Notes under the pieces: model-generated
The model's database searches: none
What the model was told of the DNA's origin: nothing
The model's input: the letters and a program-made list of their open reading frames with translations, nothing else
Part shown: positions 28,546 through 52,400 of the stretch, in pieces
Position numbering within the stretch: position 1 is the first letter of the stretch
Layout of the letters: every line of letters starts with the position of its first letter
Assembly: GCA_021613535.1 (NCBI GenBank)
Contig: CP075493.1
Coordinates: forward strand, 4,836,001-4,900,000
Source: Adineta vaga
Lineage: Eukaryota > Animalia > Rotifera
DNA: 64,000 bases
Reading direction: 5' to 3'
Translations under genes and position numbers: made by a program

Positions 28546-31500
28546 ATGATGACAAACAAGTTTATCCTTAGATGGATAATCTTCTGTACATCTCTATCAT
28601 GGATTCATGCACAAAATAATCGATCAATAGATATGGTAGCTATTGCCAAGCCACATCCAAAAGGTACGCTAGTAAAATTTTATATAGAGCTTTTGTCGCA
28701 TAAAATCTAATTAATATGTAAATAAGTCAATTTCTTGAATTTTCACCTAAATAAGTTTAATGAAAATCTAGTAAACAAAGTAATTTGAATTTTTTGGACA
28801 CAGTATTTGCTTATAATTAAAGTAGTAAATTGAATTATCGAAAGAATCCAATCATCTAGTGAAGGTTATGTGTCTCATTCGTTATCACTTTTATGTTATC
28901 ATTAACGACTCAATTTCTAATGCGATGAAGAAAAAGTATACATACATGTATATGCTTAATCAAAAACTACAGGTATATTGATGAGTCAACTGATAGACAT
29001 CGAACACGATTGGAATAATTTGAGATGAAAGGTCCACATTCCTATGTCAAATAGAAAGAAGAATGAAGATTAAAGAAAATATCATTGAATATAACAGATT
29101 AAACTTCAGACATGATGAACTTTGAAACATTTGATACAAATCAGATGATATAAGAAAAATAAAAAGAAGAAATTTATGATATCTTATGAATTGTCATTGA
29201 AGATTTGACATTGTCTTTTAGTTTGTCGGGATATTCGTATAACAATATTTGAAGTTCGTCGAGGTCTTGATTTGCAAATGTTTGCATCTTGTGAGATCGT
29301 TATTGGTTCCATCATTTTTGCTCCAATGCCATTGACAACTAATATGACAACAACAACAATATCACCAAATGAAACAACTACAGCTTCAACACTAACATCA
29401 GACAATTTGGCACCTGTTCGTTTTCCTTATCTTCGTGAAGTTTACGGGTACATGCTTTTGGGTTACTCATCACTTCGTTCATTTTCTTCGATGTTTCCAC
29501 GTTTATCTGTTATACATGGTCGAGTACTTTATCATGGTTATGCATTAATTATAATGGAAAATTTACAATTAGATGATTTAGGTTTAACATCATTGATTAA
29601 TATTCGTCGAGGCAATATTATTATTGCACGAAATGCTCAATTATGCTACGCAAAAACAATTCGATGGTATGATATTATTGACAATAAAAAAGCACAAGTT
29701 ATTCTTCGACAAAATCGTGATAATTGTGCATTTTGTCCGACATGTCCATCTGCATGTTGGTCGCCCACACAATGTCAACATCAATGTTCATCGCACTGTA
29801 AAGGTAATTGCTTATCCGAACAAGTTTGTTGTCCTGATCAATGTGTCGGCGGATGTTATTATCAAAATGTGACAGCATCAACCAATTTAGTTTGTAATGC
29901 TTGTCGTAATATGAGAATTTATGCGACAGGAGAATGTGTACAACAATGTCCAGCACAGATGTTAAAGGTAAATGATAAAAATTTTCTCATCGAATGTAAG
30001 AAACATTCTTTTTTCTAGGTCGTGGACTCTCTATGCGTGACACGTCAAGAATGTACATCATTCTTCTTTGGTGAAGGCTATATCTTAGATGAAACAAATG
30101 AATGTGTACCAAAATGTCCATCCGGTTTTGATTTACTCTTAGGCACACGTTGTGTACGTTGTAATTCATCACCAGAAAATAATTATTGTCATGGCGCATG
30201 CCGAGAACAACATATACGTTCAATTAGTGATTTTAATTTATTAAGATATTGTTCACGTGTTCATACATTGAATATTTATAACATAGCAGCAGTTGAATCA
30301 ACGGATAATAATCTTTTAGATGCATTTAGTGCTTTTGCATCTCTTGAACAAATTGATCATGAATTTACTATTCATAATGTCAATATATTTTCATCATTAA
30401 GTATATTTTCTAAATTAAAACGTATTGGTATATCATCGAATGCAACAATAACAATTGAAGAAAATGATTTTCTTAGTGATTTATGGCCTTCAAAACATCC
30501 ACCACCGATTATGCAAGGAAATTTAAATATTGTTCGAAATGCACGACTTTGTTTAAAACGTATCGAATTATTTATTGATTATACAACTTCGATAGAAAAA
30601 GGTAAAAGCAAAGGAAACATAAAAGAAAAATCAAACTATTCATTTGGGTTGTGTTTTTGTTTTAGATTTACTAATTACAAATAATACATTTAATGAATAT
30701 GCGAATGGCTATTTAGCATCATGTGAATCAAATTTATTAACAATAACTGTTGATAAAATTCGTTCCTTAACAGCACAAATTGTTGTTGCTGTACCGAAAC
30801 AATTATTTTTTCGTTCAGGTGGAAAAGCTGATTATTTACGTCGACCATTTCTATCCGTCTATTACAAAGCAACTCAAACACGAAATGAAACACATTTTGA
30901 TTCAACACAATCTCATAAATGGTTGAGAATTGTCGAAAAAGTTAATTATAATCCATCACCACACGGTAAATATCGTTTTCATCATCATCATATCTATTGA
31001 CGCATTTTTAATCATTCAAGTATAACGAGAGATAATTTGTGTGTTATACATAACAACGACAAAAGAGGTTATTAATCAAGATGTCAATCATTTTATATAT
31101 GATTTGACATGAATTAAATTTCGATTAGAACATCGTCCTTCACACGAAAGATTGTTGTTGATTTAATAAATGAAATTTGTTAGATATTTGATAAAAAAAA
31201 AAAGAACTACTTCTTTTTTAGGTGGATCATTTACAATGAGTGTAGACTTATCGTCTTTACTCGGTGCAACATCGTATGCTGTTTATGCATCGATCACTTC
31301 CAATGTTAATACAGTTGGTTTGTATTCCACAATTGCATATTTTCGTACATTACCTCGTCAACCTGAACCAGTTTTGAATTTACGTGGAGAAGGATTATCA
31401 AGTAATTCAATTGAATTAATGTGGCAACCACCTTCAAAACCTAATGGTGAAATTGCAACTTACTTGATTTATTATGCACCAATAGAAGATCGATTACCGG

Positions 31501-44391: not shown

Positions 44392-44917
44392 AGTCAGATT
44401 TCAAATAAGACAATATCACGAAAGCAATCCTTTTTATATCATTTATACAGATGGGATTTGACATCATATTTTTTTAAACGCAAAAAACAGCGTATGTAAT
44501 GCTTTAATCCGTAGAAATTTGATATTCTTTCTATTGTTTCAAAGATATATACTTAATCAATATGACAAAGCTAATTTCTGTAAAACTAGACCAATAGTTT
44601 CTGTCCATTCTCGATTGTTTTTACTTTTCTACATAATTCTTCCCATGTTATTAATCAAACAAATCATTTCATTACAGATATTCAAATGACTTGCCTTACT
44701 AGTTCTTTCATCAATGATGAAAATAGTTGTGCAAGCACATAGAGCCTTGTATGAATATATATATGCATACATCAGAACCGATCATGGGTATGGGAAAACG
44801 TGAAATTGCGACACCTGCCGGATTTGACAATTAAAGAACAGTAATGATAACCAATGTAAATTTTAAACAAGAAAAGAAAAGTCGGTTACATTTCATTCAT
44901 AAAGTCTTTATTTTGTA

Positions 44918-45937
44918 ATGTCTCGTCTCTGTCTTTTAAATCATGACAAACAGATTTTTATAAATATAGACGAGAATATTGATCTTTCTAAACAATTCAT
45001 TGCAGCTACTTATCGTCAATTGGTATTAGCAACAAAATGTATGATTACTATTTATGATCTTTCGTCTATTCTTCTCAGTGAACAATTTACTAATTTGTAT
45101 GATAAAATTATTATTCCAAATCCTATTCTTGCCTTAACATCAACAATCGATCGAATTATTTATGTTTATCAATCGATAGATAATTCTAATGAATTAAAAA
45201 TATGTTCAATACCACCTTCTCAATTACCAAAACAATATTTTACACTTGAATCATTTGATATCAATGAAAGAATACATCTCTGTTCACTTGATGATGGAAC
45301 AATATTTCTTGCCTATGATACAAAGATCTTTTCATTAACAAATGATGATCATTGGTCATTCGATTCTAGAATTATGAAATTATGTAGTGGAAAAGAACAT
45401 GCTTTAGTTTTATTATCCGATGGACGAATATTTAGTTGGGGAAATGGTCTTCACGGTGCACTTGGTCATGGAGATCTTGAACCCTGTTCACAACCAACAC
45501 ATATTGAATCTTTATCTGATAATAACGGTGTTATTGATATTGCTGCTGGTGGATGGCATTCCTTAGGTAGATGATGCAAGAGAGAAAAGATTTCTAACAT
45601 GACGTTTTTATTTTTCTATTCAGCTTTGCTTTCGGATGGATCAGTAATGGCATGGGGTTGGAATAATGATGGTGCTCTTGGTTTAGAATCTTCCGATGAA
45701 GATAATACAGCAGGTGTTTTCTGTGATCCTATACTAGTAACATGTATACCATTAGATGTGGATTGTACGAAAATATCAGCTGGTGCAAGACATAGTGCAT
45801 TTCTTGGCTCAAATGATCATATTTGGTTATGTGGTTCGAATAAACATGGACAATTAGGAAATAAATCTACATTTTTAGTTGAAAAGAATACATCTATTTA
45901 TTGTCTATCTTGGTTTACTGTTCTAATTTGTTCGTAA
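44918..45937 (+). CDS. RCCD1: RCC1-domain protein, RCCD1-like
   Basis: RCC1 repeats SGKEHAL...WGNGLHGALGHG, IAAGGWHS...WGWNNDGALG, ISAGARHS...CGSNKHGQLG; two exons. Confidence 0.8.
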
Positions 45938-45947
45938 ATTTTTCTAG

Positions 45948-48924
45948 ATGGATGATGATCTTCGACCTGCACAGATTCGTCCTTTAGCTGGAACGACACG
46001 TCATCGTTTATGTGCTGGTCAAGTTTGTGTTAGTGTTGCATCGTGTGTAAAAGAACTTATTGAAAATAGTCTCGATGCACATAGTACACGTTTACAATTG
46101 ACATTTATTGCACATGGTGCAGATCTTATTGAATTAGTCGATAATGGTGATGGTATTCCCGAACATGATTTTGAAAAAATCGGTAAATATACAAGATATA
46201 TAAAATGTATTGCAATAAGACAAATGGTTTCCTTGTAGGATTGCGATATCATACATCAAAATTAAGTCAATTTGAAGATTTAGAACATGTGATAACCTAT
46301 GGATTTCGTGGTGAAGCTCTCTCATCGATTTGTATCTATGCGTCTGTCTTGATTCTTTGCTTTTCTTTCTAAAACATAATCAATGCTATTCTTTAGAGAT
46401 GTAACTATTGTTACGCGTCATGCATCTGCATCAATTGGAACAAAACTAATATTCGATGGTGAAGGACAAGTTATTTCTCGTGTTCCATGTCCTCGAGAAG
46501 TAAAACTTTTTGATTGTAAATAATCTTTTATTCGAAATTAGTTTTCTTCTCATTTATTAGACTGGTACAACAGTATCCATCCGTTCATTATTCAGTCGTT
46601 TTCCTGTTCGACGTACTGAATTACAAGCACATTCGAAACGAGAATTTTCTCAAGCATTAAATATCATTCAATCATTTGCGATTATATCTCGACAAATACA
46701 ATTCTTTCAAATATCTTCATCAGCAGATAATCATCCACCTTCACATCCATTATTAACATTAACTCCTTCAACTTCATTAAAAGACACATTAGGTCAAATC
46801 TTTGGACAAAAAATACTTGAAAGTATTATTCATATTGATGATAACAATGATGATGAAAATGATACAAATAAAGAATTCAAAGTAAATGATCATATTGAGA
46901 TACTTTTTTTTGAATAAGACTACTCCTATTCATTTAGTTTGATGGTTATATTTCTCGACCTCAACATGGTTCCGGTCGTTCATCAGCAGATCGACAATAT
47001 CTTTATGTTAATAATCGTCCTATTGATTGTGCACCTTTCTTACGAACAATAAATGATATCTATCGACAATTTAATCCTAATCAATATCCTCTCGTTGCAT
47101 TGAGTATTGAAGTACTTGATCGAAGTACACTTGATATCAATTGTACACCAGATAAACGAACAGTTTTTGTTGAACATTTATCGAATATGTGTGATCGAAT
47201 ACGAGTTATTCTAAATCAATTATTTGAAGCAAGTAGTAATGTTTATGTTGGATCAAATAAACGACCACAAGAAATATCAGAAACCAATGATTTACCAACA
47301 CCGCCAACAAAACAAATGCGAATTGAACGATTCGTTAAAAAACCTGTAAGGTTGTCAACATCATTGGTATTGATTCAAAGTAGTTTCTTTATTTTTGTTT
47401 TAGTCCCAATCTTCTGATATACCAGTTCTAACGACAAGTAATCCTTTATCAAAATTTTCTGGTCCTTTTAATATGGTATTTAATAGTATTGAGAATAAGA
47501 AGCATGTAGTATTTATTTTTGGTTTTTAGATTCGTAGTGAAAAGTCAAGTCCATCTTCATCGAAATTATCAACACAAGAACGAGCTCTATTCACATTTGA
47601 ATCACATAGTATCGCGAAAGATAAGTTATCTCTTTCGGAAAATGAAGAAGAAGATGAGGAGGAGGAGGAAGAGGAAGATTCACATGAGAATACATTACTT
47701 CATGGAAGTCCATCAAAAAAAGATTTCATCGATAAAATCAAACAACTTCGACAAAAAGATGAAGAAACTGAAATACCTGTATCAACAGATCATGATCTAC
47801 AAGTGTATACATCAACACCAGCTGTTAAAGAAAAATCTAAACCGTTCGAAGAACCAAAAAATATTGTACGTTAAAGTTAAACTTCAGTTATAAATCATTC
47901 GAGAAAACAACTTATATTACATTTTATTTCTAGCAAGTAACATCCTATAAATCATGTGAAATCAAAGTAAAATTTAGTATGGATAAATTGAAAGAAAAAT
48001 ATAGAGCAATGTCTGAAAAAGAAGATATTTCTTCAGTAATTTCCGATCATCGTTTTAATATACATATTGAAGAAAATCAAAATGAAGAAGCTGAAGATGA
48101 ACTTCGACGACAAATTGATAAAGCTGATTTCGAAAGGTTTGTCTATTCAATATTCTTCAAAAATACAATTGTTAACGAACTCTCATTTCCTATAGAATGT
48201 CAATCATTGGCCAATTTAATCGTGGTTTTATCTTAGTGACACTCGTCGATCATGCCTCACAATTATTTATTGTTGATCAACATGCTGCTGATGAAATTTA
48301 TAATTTTCATCGTCTTTATGAACAAACAACTGTTAGTCGACAACCACTTCTTCTTCCAAAACCGATACCACTCGATCCATCACGACAAGTTCTTCTTCAA
48401 CAACATTTAGATTTATTCAATCGTCTCGGGTAATTTTCAGAATAGAAAGTAAATTTCAAATCGAAATTCTATGTTCTAGTTTTGAGATTGAAATTGATGA
48501 GAATGAATCTCGTATTGATCGTCGTTGTCGTGTACTTTCATATCCAACTATATCCGGTGCTCATTCATGTGTATTTGGTATTGATGAAATCGATGAAATT
48601 CTTTCACATTTAACTGATTCAACTCAACAAACGCGTCAAGAAGAACATTATGAATCATCACGTTTACGAAAAGTATTTGCCTCGAAAGCATGTCGAATGT
48701 CCATTATGATTGGAACTGATTTAACAAAGAAGCAAATGATATCAGTTGTTCGACATCTTGCTCAACTAGCAAAACCATGGGTAATTTGCATAACGTGAAA
48801 AAAAAATCTTACAATTTTTCGTCTGTTTTAGAATTGTCCTCATGGAAGACCAACGATTCGACATGTATCTAATCTTACTGAAGTTACAAATGGCTTACTT
48901 TCTGATAAATATCATCCCATATAA
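45948..48924 (+). CDS. PMS2: MutL homologue, mismatch-repair endonuclease PMS2
   Basis: [72 protein letters not shown]. Confidence 0.95.
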
Positions 48925-49489
48925 TCAAGAGTTTTATATAGTTTTTTAATGATAAAAATTTCATGAATAGACCTTTTTTTATTGACTTTATGTATGAAAA
49001 TTGAAATTGAATAAATAACTATGATATAGAAAAACAACGTTTTCTCCAATTGATTGGTTTTAAGAGAAATATTCAAGAATTTAAAACATCTTGAAGAATA
49101 CATTACGATGTAAAGTACAGAGTTTAAACAAGAATACACAATTTTGTTTTAATGCAGACTAACTTTAGCAGTCCTTGAGAGTACATCTTTGACAATAATT
49201 TCACACATATTTTCAAAGCAATTGTTCCTAATTATATCGAAAATGTGACGATATAATAATCGGTATGAAGAGCTCAATGCCAACTAACGCCCCCTATAAC
49301 GGTGTTTTAATACAAGTGGATGACTATCAATACCATAAGAATGAAAATAATGTCTTGTATTCTGATTCATTCATTTTGTACTGTTGTACACGTTTTAGCA
49401 TTAGCAGACAGACAGCCACATCACTAGCATATCATTATCATTATCATAATATATATACAGTAAACGGCAATATTTGTTCCATCCATAAA

Positions 49490-52400
49490 ATGATTTCTTC
49501 GTCAGCTGGACCATTATCCTTACGCGATCGTCATATCGGTTAGTCTTAGTAAAACTTCTTTTCTTGAAAACATGTAAAATGTTATGTATCTTTTTTAGCT
49601 ACTCTCAAACAAATGCTCAATTTAAATACTTCTCCAATGACTGTATTGAAAACCACTGGGGAAGAATTAGCATGGAAAGTTTTAACATATGATGAACTCG
49701 GTCAAGATATCATTTCACCCTTATTAACTGTAAAAGAACTACGTGATTTAGGTGTGACACTACATGTGTATGTATTCATTTTTCGTCAATTTAATAAACA
49801 TCAATATATTCTGTACTTTCAGGTCACTAAAATCAGAACGTGATCCAGTCGATGAAATTGCTGCTGTGTATTTTATAATGCCAACAAGAGATAATATTAC
49901 TCGAATAGCAAAAGTAAAACGTTTTCAACAAAAAAAATGATGTTTATTATATATATATATATAATATATAGGATTTAGCTGATGGTTTATATGAATCATA
50001 TTATTTGAATTTTATTGCACCTATTCCACGCGATCTTTTGGAAGAATTAGCAACAGCTGCATTAGAATCAAATTCTCAACAGTGTATAACTAAGGTAAAT
50101 GAATATAAGAATGAATTTCATGACTTACAATTAAATTTTTTTAGATTTATGATCAATATCTCGATTTTATCACACTCGAAGACGAATTATTTTGTTTGAG
50201 ACAAACAGGAAGAAATAGTATATCGTATTATGGTAAGTAAGAACGTATTGTTGATTATAAAAATATCAATTAACATATATTTTGTAGCGCTCAATCGTCC
50301 ACAAATGCGTGATGACGAAATGGATGCAATCATCACAACAATTGTTGATAGTCTATTTTCCGTATGTGTAACATTAGGTATATAGAAAACATAAAATTTT
50401 TTATGTGAATCTAAAGTTTGATTGAAATTTTGTTTAGGTTCAGTACCAATCATTCGATGTCCAAAAGGTGAAGCAGCTGAAATCATAGGCGAAGTGTGTT
50501 TGATTCATTTCTAGATAAACTATTTCTAATTTGTATTCTTTTCCTCTTTCAGAAGCTTGATAAGAAACTACGAGAGAATCTACGTGATCCACGAAATAGT
50601 CTCTTTTCATCAGATTCCATGGCTACAGGAGCTTTAAGGTTAGTTAAACTATTTCTTATTCTTAAGATAATTATTCATTTCAATTAATTTTTATAGTTTC
50701 CAACGACCACTTCTTGTGATCCTAGATCGCAGTACTGATTTAGCTTCTCTTCTTCATCATACATGGACTTATCAAGCACTTGCTCATGATATCTTTGTAA
50801 ATCATCAATTGAATATAATTCAAGCCAATACAAATCATTTCTTTTCTAGGATTTTAAATTGAATCGAGTAGAATTTGAAGAAGTCGATGAATCTGTTGTA
50901 TTAAGTGATGGTCGACATCCATCAAAAAAACGTTCTTATGATTTGATTCCAACAGATCAATTCTGGAAACAACAAAAAGGAAAGTAAGACTAGAATAATC
51001 TTTTATTATCACAATAATCGAAGTTTTATGTTTTACTAGTCCATTTCCGAAAGTGGCTGAAGCAATTCAAGAAGACATAGAACGATATCGTCAATCCGAA
51101 GATGAAGTTAAACGACTTAAATCTCAGATGGTTTGTCTTTAGGAAAACTCTCATTTTTGACAATGAAATTTCATTTTATCTTCAATAGGGTATCGAAGGT
51201 GATGCTCAAGATTTAGCAATTAGTTTATTGAATGATACAACAAGTCGATTAACAAGTGCAGTGAGTTCTTTACCAGAATTATTAGAAAAAAAACGTTTAC
51301 TTGATGCACATACAAATATTGCTACGGCTGTTCTCGATGAAATTAAAGTAAATTAGTATTCTTTCTATTTTATAATTCTTTCTATTTTCTTTATATTAGA
51401 GACGAAAACTGGATATTTTCTATGAAACAGAAGAAAAATTAATGAGTAAACAAGTACAAGTAAACGATCATTATAAAACGATATTTTCCTTATTTTATGT
51501 TTGCAAATATTAATAGGAAAAATCTCTGATGGAAGTTCTTTCCGATCCTGCTGGTAAGTGAAAATTTTTCAAAATAATTAAACTCTACTATGAATTTAAT
51601 CTAGCTGGTACACCCGAAGATAAACTTCGTCTATTTTTAATTCATTACATCTGTACACCAACAATGACACAAGTATATGATCTTATGAAATTTCTTCGAT
51701 CAAAATATTTTTATCTTTCGAATTTTTAGGCAGAACTTGATCAATATACAGCAGTGTTACGAGGTTCGAAATGTACTTGTATAGATGCAATTAGTTATAT
51801 TAAACGGTGGAAAACAATCAGTAAAATGAGTGTTGTTTCACAAGCAAGAGAAGGTGGAATTACAACAACTATGGGGTAAGAAAGAAAGTACTGAGATGTG
51901 TACACACTATACTTAACATATGTTCTGATTTTTAGAATGTTTTCAAATTTGGTAAGCAAAGCTTCAAAATTTGCAATGGAAGGTGTTAAAAATCTTGGTA
52001 TTAAACAATATGTAAATAGATTTGTTTGTAGAATTATGATTTAATGAAAGTATGCATGTATTTCTAGAAATTACCAGTAACAAAAATTGTTGATAATCTA
52101 ATGGAATGTCGTTCATCACCTGAAACTGATGATTATCGTTATTTTGATCCAAAACTTCTTCGACCAACTGATGCGTAAGTGAAAACTAAATCTTTCTTTT
52201 CAATACAAAAAGAAAAACAATGAATGAAAATTCATCTATCGTTATCTTTTCTCCATAGCAGTAATTCATCTGAGGAACAGTAAGATAGATAAAAGCTAAT
52301 TCATAAACTAATACTGACAAACTATTCGAATGCATATCATTTTTCTTTGTTCATTTTGTTTTAGTGCAAATATTGCTCGTAATCGTCAAGGTTTTAATGA

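Follow-up and report, generated by a model that had tools for sequence, protein, structure and literature searches.

A candidate spliced-leader operon without intercistronic DNA: the RCC1-like–PMS2 gene pair of bdelloid rotifers

How can two genes both yield messenger RNA when only 10 nucleotides (nt) separate the stop codon of the first from the initiation codon of the second? This question is raised by a 64,000-nt stretch of the Adineta vaga genome (contig CP075493.1, positions 4,836,001 to 4,900,000; hereafter the window), in which a gene encoding a protein with RCC1 repeats (RCC1-like) is followed on the same strand by PMS2, which encodes a DNA mismatch repair (MMR) endonuclease subunit. 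A sequence-only reading of the window had proposed that the pair is a dicistronic operon resolved by trans-splicing, and the positions it gave for the RCC1-like stop, the spacer, the PMS2 ATG, a CTAAT motif and the RCC1-like exon-1 donor proved exact to the base (Table 1). The answer reached here is that the pair is probably an operon of the kind described in Ciona and, as SL1-type operons, in Caenorhabditis elegans, which have no intercistronic DNA and in which a spliced leader (SL) is added to the downstream messenger. This answer is built on direct observations, namely the anatomy of the locus, the conservation of the pair together with a 3' splice site flush with the PMS2 ATG, spliced RNA extending over both genes, and the presence of SL RNA genes in the genome.

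Conservation of the junction was assessed by searching for the orthologous loci exon by exon and fetching the encoding contigs, spliced models never being joined for searching. The RCC1-like gene precedes PMS2 in ten bdelloid lineages (A. vaga, A. ricciae, A. steineri, Rotaria socialis and six others), with stop-to-ATG spacers of 10 nt in A. vaga, 13 nt in A. ricciae, 16 nt in L015, 19 nt in L022, 21 nt in L006, 26 nt in L014, 40 nt in R. socialis, 44 nt in both L023 and L024, and 45 nt in A. steineri. The C-terminal tail of the RCC1-like protein, the position of its stop codon and the length of the spacer modulo 3 all vary, yet every one of these otherwise unalignable spacers ends in a pyrimidine-rich stretch and a YAG that is flush with the PMS2 ATG, i.e. 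the acceptor noticed before PMS2 in A. vaga is kept in 10/10 lineages. Judged against the sequence background of the window, where a flush YAG precedes 3-4% of all ATGs and a flush YAG with a pyrimidine tract 0.5-0.75%, the acceptor at the PMS2 ATG exceeds chance. The next gene in the same loci, Sec1, lies ~280-570 nt beyond PMS2, and the close spacing is therefore peculiar to the RCC1-like–PMS2 pair. When the spacer was compared across bdelloids, as the sequence-only reading had suggested, linkage and flush acceptor were thus found in ten lineages, while in Didymodactylos carnosus PMS2 is unlinked from any RCC1-like gene.

That these are two separate genes, as had also been claimed, is borne out. 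The initiation codon at 45948 agrees with that of P0036, an A. vaga entry of NCBI with 802 amino acids (aa) and the N-terminus MDDDLRPAQ, and is immediately preceded by an in-frame stop (TAG, 45945-47). An in-frame fusion or read-through of the stop codon was rejected on account of this TAG and of the spacer lengths, which modulo 3 give 1, 0, 0, 2, 1, 1, 1, 1, 2 and 2 among the ten lineages. Cis-splicing of RCC1-like exon 1 onto the AG at 45947 was likewise rejected, because the product would read G|AT GGA TGA, a stop, and no such joint was found in any run. Public gene models nevertheless fuse the pair in A. ricciae (P0224, 1093 aa; P0042, 958 aa) and in Rotaria sp. Silwood1 (P0193, 1113 aa). 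The A. ricciae DNA (L021:2501-6436) has a stop codon and the 13-nt spacer between the fused genes, and on this sequence the fused models are probably wrong; the fusion of neighbours by gene predictors is a typical artefact at operons (PMC7986045).

The transcripts of the locus were read from assembled Logan contigs, which show presence and not absence. In runs X1 and X2 of A. vaga, which belong to study P1, the eleven introns of the pair have all been removed at GT..AG borders, and each run contains a 2395-nt contig that starts at 44795 and continues unbroken through 45935-45948, lacking the RCC1-like intron and six PMS2 introns. Removal of the RCC1-like intron is seen as a joint 45564>45622 (cut +2) in runs X1, X2 and X5. 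DNA contamination as the source of these bridges is ruled out by the missing introns and by the silent region that follows, RNA contigs halting near 48996 and depth being 0 over 49006-49367. At the other end, the contigs begin ~30-40 nt past a TATATATA run and 123 nt before the RCC1-like ATG, which has no flush acceptor; no SL was seen at the RCC1-like 5' end in A. vaga contigs. In a second bdelloid, a 3444-nt contig of run SRR5248432 (L006) contains a complete RCC1-like open reading frame (ORF) of 323 aa and a complete, uninterrupted PMS2 ORF of 791 aa, flanked by a 29-nt leader without SL and a 46-nt trailer in which AATAAA stands 5 nt short of the end of the contig, its 21-nt spacer ending in tttcag. 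This contig represents spliced RNA, because genomic fragments of the same 90% cluster (P0228) run into PMS2 intron 1. A 1158-nt contig from another run (L027) also crosses the junction; it was considered as an RCC1-like 3' end and rejected, since it continues into PMS2. A related contig of 3613 nt, whose RCC1-like protein is near-identical, has been recorded as well. Transcripts spanning both genes, which the sequence-only reading had named as a check on its proposal, thus exist as spliced contigs in A. vaga and in a second bdelloid.

Table 1. Features of the RCC1-like–PMS2 locus of A. vaga (positions in the window)
Feature	Positions	Strand	Details and basis
Candidate core promoter, TATA-like run AATATATATATGCATA	44754..44769	+	sequence; promoter role putative
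RCC1-like 5' untranslated part	44795..44917	+	contigs of X1 and X2 both start at 44795
RCC1-like exon 1	44918..45566	+	216 codons + 1 nt; ORF; Pfam RCC1, RCC1_2, WD40_RLD
RCC1-like intron	45567..45623	+	57 nt, GT..AG, phase 1, donor GT at 45567
RCC1-like exon 2	45624..45937	+	stop TAA 45935-37
Branch-point-like CTAAT	45923..45927	+	within last RCC1-like codons, 20 nt 5' of AG; sequence
Spacer ATTTTTCTAG	45938..45947	+	10 nt; pyrimidine tract and YAG, flush with PMS2 ATG
PMS2	45948..48924	+	11 exons, 10 GT..AG introns, stop TAA 48922-24; joints from RNA contigs
PMS2 exon end/next exon start, first five	46182/46239, 46341/46397, 46499/46561, 46881/46938, 47345/47404	+	
PMS2 exon end/next exon start, last five	47475/47530, 47865/47934, 48136/48196, 48429/48480, 48780/48832	+	
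Candidate poly(A) signal of the unit, AATAAA	49010..49015	+	3' of PMS2 stop; sequence

Two further features of these contigs concern their extent. RNA contigs of all runs are broken at a GAA/GAG repeat (47636-47686, + strand) that encodes an acidic run in the PMS2 linker. A contig of run X5 matches the window from 44751 (+) on and is preceded by 107 unlike letters, just 5' of the TATA-like run; as there is no AG before 44751, the mismatch resembles variation of the promoter region between strains or haplotypes and not splicing.

SL trans-splicing has been known in rotifers since 2005. The sequence of the rotifer SL is GGCTTATTACAACTTACCAAGAG (PMC3795323), and a passage of PMC1925144 that cites Pouchkina-Stantcheva and Tunnacliffe (2005) puts it on over half of bdelloid transcripts. 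With one mismatch allowed, the SL is matched 42 times in the genome and a reversed control not at all, and a GTAAAT donor follows the SL match in every SL RNA gene locus that was read (L008-L013).

What these elements might do together can be outlined as follows. Because 10 nt leave no room for a promoter or for a 3' end signal, the boundary has to be transcribed through for either product to be made, an argument that Satou et al. (2006; PMC1488885) applied to those Ciona operons that lack intercistronic DNA. On the spanning RNA there are ~35 ATG triplets upstream of the PMS2 ATG (counted on the RCC1-like exon pieces); PMS2 is therefore unreachable by scanning, which disposes of leaky scanning as a route to it, and needs a 5' end of its own. 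SL trans-splicing is the economical explanation for such an end, because an invariant 3' splice site stands at the ATG and is used by no cis donor. The RCC1-like gene and PMS2 would thus form one dicistronic unit with a single promoter 5' of 44795, and PMS2 would acquire its capped 5' end by SL trans-splicing at the AG at 45946-47, the predicted joint being ...ACTTACCAAGAG onto A45948. The spacer would act as the SL acceptor and possibly also as the poly(A) site of the upstream messenger, the upstream product being either the two-gene RNA left unprocessed or an mRNA whose 3' end is at the acceptor or close to it. Each precursor would then give rise to the upstream or the downstream mRNA, never to both, and the two processing routes would compete. 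Competition between the products had already been posited from the sequence; its likeness to the Ciona operons without intercistronic DNA (PMC1488885) holds, while the competition itself we infer. A more tentative extension, for which the odds are rather against than in favour, is that bdelloids have Ciona-type operons without intercistronic DNA and that the dose of the MMR endonuclease is set post-transcriptionally, by 3' end formation versus SL trans-splicing; the intercistron-less class would then have arisen independently in rotifers.

Hints about the upstream 3' end are slight. In Ciona, the upstream messenger's poly(A) tail directly follows the acceptor AG (PMC1488885). No canonical AATAAA was found near the A. 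vaga junction, where the closest variant is AATACA at 45887; among the ten spacers, AATAAA occurs 11 nt (L024) and 15 nt (L014) before the AG and is absent from the other eight, which by analogy weakly fits the Ciona pattern. In run X5 (study P2), a contig of RCC1-like exon 2 ends at 45948 followed by two unmatched letters, which are unreadable; A45948 could, at a stretch, be the first A of a tail, as in the 'AG + poly(A)' arrangement of Ciona.

A number of points weigh against an SL-resolved operon and have to be set beside this evidence. A contig over two genes is no proof of a single molecule, since overlapping transcripts assemble alike, and both A. vaga runs with bridging contigs come from one study. 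No SL-like loose end at 45948, the start of PMS2, was found in the assembled contigs of four runs, and a search of JGI metagenome contigs for the SL followed by ATG and PMS2 sequence returned two chance matches without the remaining SL. The original proposal thus stands as regards spanning RNA, conserved acceptor and SL RNA genes, and not as regards an SL joined at 45948, which is not seen in the contigs; put in terms of the criteria used for Ciona, the unresolved dicistronic RNA and the lack of intercistronic DNA (2/3) are found here, and an SL at the downstream gene is not. The cluster members of bdelloid PMS2 include no monocistronic PMS2 transcript contig, and short PMS2 N-terminal fragments, considered as SL-headed transcripts, were in each case read a genomic exon-1 ORF entering the intron. 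To a de Bruijn assembler, the 23 nt of an SL form a blind branch below k=31, which would be clipped wherever read-through RNA exists. Such clipping is probably why the SL is missing from the contigs, but this explanation has to be counted on the debit side too. Finally, in D. carnosus, PMS2 is preceded by ~1 kb of upstream DNA and then by a minus-strand Roquin gene, with no RCC1-like neighbour, and at some point in the history of the lineage PMS2 has therefore had a promoter to itself.

It is such a promoter that the most serious rival, though a less probable one, invokes. PMS2 would be transcribed from within the RCC1-like gene, its outron would be trans-spliced to the SL at 45946-47, and the RCC1-like mRNA would end further 3', so that the two RNAs overlap. 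A flush acceptor would be expected just as much as under a dicistronic unit, and the contigs, as said, cannot separate one molecule from overlapping ones. D. carnosus, with its own region upstream of PMS2, provides a parallel, for an in-frame ATG lies 21 nt before the annotated start, directly after ttttttgcag (L017:5970-6003; site L017:5980), and from its sequence may be the true start with a likely SL acceptor. As this unlinked PMS2 also has a flush acceptor, trans-splicing of PMS2 is suggested to be older than its linkage to the RCC1-like gene. However, an internal promoter must sit in constrained coding sequence in each of ten lineages, and the RCC1-like 3' end would have to lie in PMS2 coding exon 1 or later, where no conserved signal was noticed. 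It also seems difficult to reconcile with the L006 contig, which is unbroken from the RCC1-like 5' untranslated region to the PMS2 poly(A) signal, and with a spacing kept at 10-45 nt when neighbouring intergenic distances are of several hundred nt.

The second rival, a stable dicistronic mRNA that is never trans-spliced and from which PMS2 is translated by termination-reinitiation or internal ribosome entry, appears very improbable. It would account for the recurrence, in two species, of spanning spliced contigs none of which carries an SL, and the distance of only 10-45 nt between stop and start would suit it. However, reinitiation would not need a pyrimidine tract and a YAG flush with the ATG, the sole invariant feature of the junction; the upstream ATGs exclude leaky scanning; and a leader reported on over half of bdelloid transcripts would here go unused. 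To our knowledge, animals have no established way of reinitiating once an ORF of ~320 codons has been translated. Still less credence is due to mere tight packing of independent genes, with an unused acceptor-like motif and bridges from occasional read-through, since the genome is indeed compact and AT-rich and chance alone puts a YAG before some ATGs, but YAG|ATG is found in all ten lineages though the spacer varies freely, 10 nt is too short for a promoter or a 3' end signal, and bridging contigs recur across independent runs and species.

An SL-resolved operon thus being preferred, the identity of its two products may be considered. Pfam finds only RCC1 repeats in the upstream protein, whose best PDB sequence matches are UVR8 and HERC2 and whose nearest ESM Atlas cluster is 'RCC1 domain-containing protein 1' (0.96). 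Of the name RCCD1 used in the sequence-only reading, the RCC1 repeats are thus confirmed, and the specific identity is weakly suggested by the model; since a language-model neighbour is the sole source of that name, the label RCC1-like is preferred. Exon 1 of the downstream gene encodes a HATPase_c_3 domain (Pfam), full-length orthologues have DNA_mis_repair and MutL_C as well, and the best named relatives are vertebrate PMS2 proteins (E ~1e-135 to 1e-139), so that by sequence its orthology to PMS2, the endonuclease subunit of MutL-alpha, is not in doubt. Both genes are single-copy in the 100.8-Mb, six-contig assembly; a comparison of ohnologues within the genome was considered and abandoned as neither gene has a second copy, the other matches being distant paralogues on C6 and C2. 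Within the endonuclease motif of PMS2, DQHA(x)2E(x)4E (48275-48310, + strand), His replaces the last Glu and the first Glu is kept. This variant is present in 32 retrieved sequences, among which is every named bdelloid PMS2 that was checked, D. carnosus included, whereas the last Glu is found in the other 112 retrieved PMS2 proteins; the Glu-to-His replacement, in a motif described as metal-binding, may therefore be a bdelloid-wide change.

Elsewhere in the window, a pyrimidine tract and a flush YAG open an ORF of at least 50 aa at 4 sites, which besides PMS2 are at 28546 (+), 61960 (+) and 21057 (-) and which, from their sequence, may be further SL acceptors. The Sec1-family gene downstream of PMS2 (region 49435-49700, ATG ~49490, + strand) has no flush acceptor, and RNA contigs apparently begin ~55 nt before its ATG; unlike PMS2, it looks like an ordinary gene with a promoter of its own.

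Little has been published on operons in rotifers. They were entered as 'ND' (not determined) in a table of 2008 (PMC2481426) and called unreported in a paper of 2021 (PMC7986045), and in 2025 rotifers were placed loosely, and without data, among the lineages with trans-splicing and operonic transcription (PMC12460157). No report of an operon in bdelloids or other rotifers was found in the searchable literature, and the sequence-only reading likewise knew of no such description in rotifers. The evidence gathered here partly supports the view that the RCC1-like–PMS2 pair is an operon of the SL type that lacks intercistronic DNA, in a phylum with no published case; conservation and spanning RNA speak for it well, but the SL joint was not seen in the contigs. 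If true, it would add an animal lineage to the small set known to bear operons and bear on the route that leads from trans-splicing to operons; the flush acceptor of the unlinked D. carnosus gene would fit a sequence of 'trans-splicing first, operon later'. Since gene predictors fuse such pairs, bdelloid annotations would need SL-aware correction. The position of PMS2 as a downstream gene may also interest workers on DNA repair in these asexual animals, which tolerate desiccation and radiation, although no evidence was found in this analysis of a functional, as opposed to historical, reason for its pairing with the RCC1-like gene.

It remains to place the pair among the known systems. Its likeness to the operons of Oikopleura and to the SL2 operons of C. 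elegans is that of polycistrons resolved by an SL, with intercistronic stretches of 23-30 nt and ~100 nt, respectively (PMC1488885). These differ in having a signal-bearing spacer between poly(A) site and acceptor, for which there is no room in the 10-13 nt of A. vaga and A. ricciae, and nematodes possess SL2 as a class of its own, against a single known SL in rotifers. The SL1-type operons of C. elegans are closer, as passages of PMC1488885 and PMC7986045 citing Williams et al. (1999) describe scant intercistronic sequence, or none, and a downstream gene resolved by the general SL; the three characterised cases treated in those passages, however, have a canonical AATAAA in the upstream cistron, which is missing from the surroundings of the A. 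vaga junction. The resemblance is most extensive with Ciona intestinalis (PMC1488885), in which genes on the same strand directly adjoin, trans-splicing of the upstream gene is not obligatory, monocistronic and operonic genes share one SL species, unresolved dicistronic cDNAs exist, and in most operons the upstream poly(A) site has no canonical AATAAA within 40 nt, just as this signal is absent from 8/10 spacers here. The two messengers have been proposed to be mutually exclusive in Ciona, as they would be in bdelloids. In Ciona, SL and poly(A) sites have been mapped to the base, whereas the candidate bdelloid unit is known from contigs, spacers and SL genes, and its upstream 3' untranslated region would be at most 10-45 nt long. 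Rotifers moreover belong to another phylum, within Gnathifera, and their SL is unrelated to that of Ciona, so that the likeness between the two, if it holds, would be convergent.

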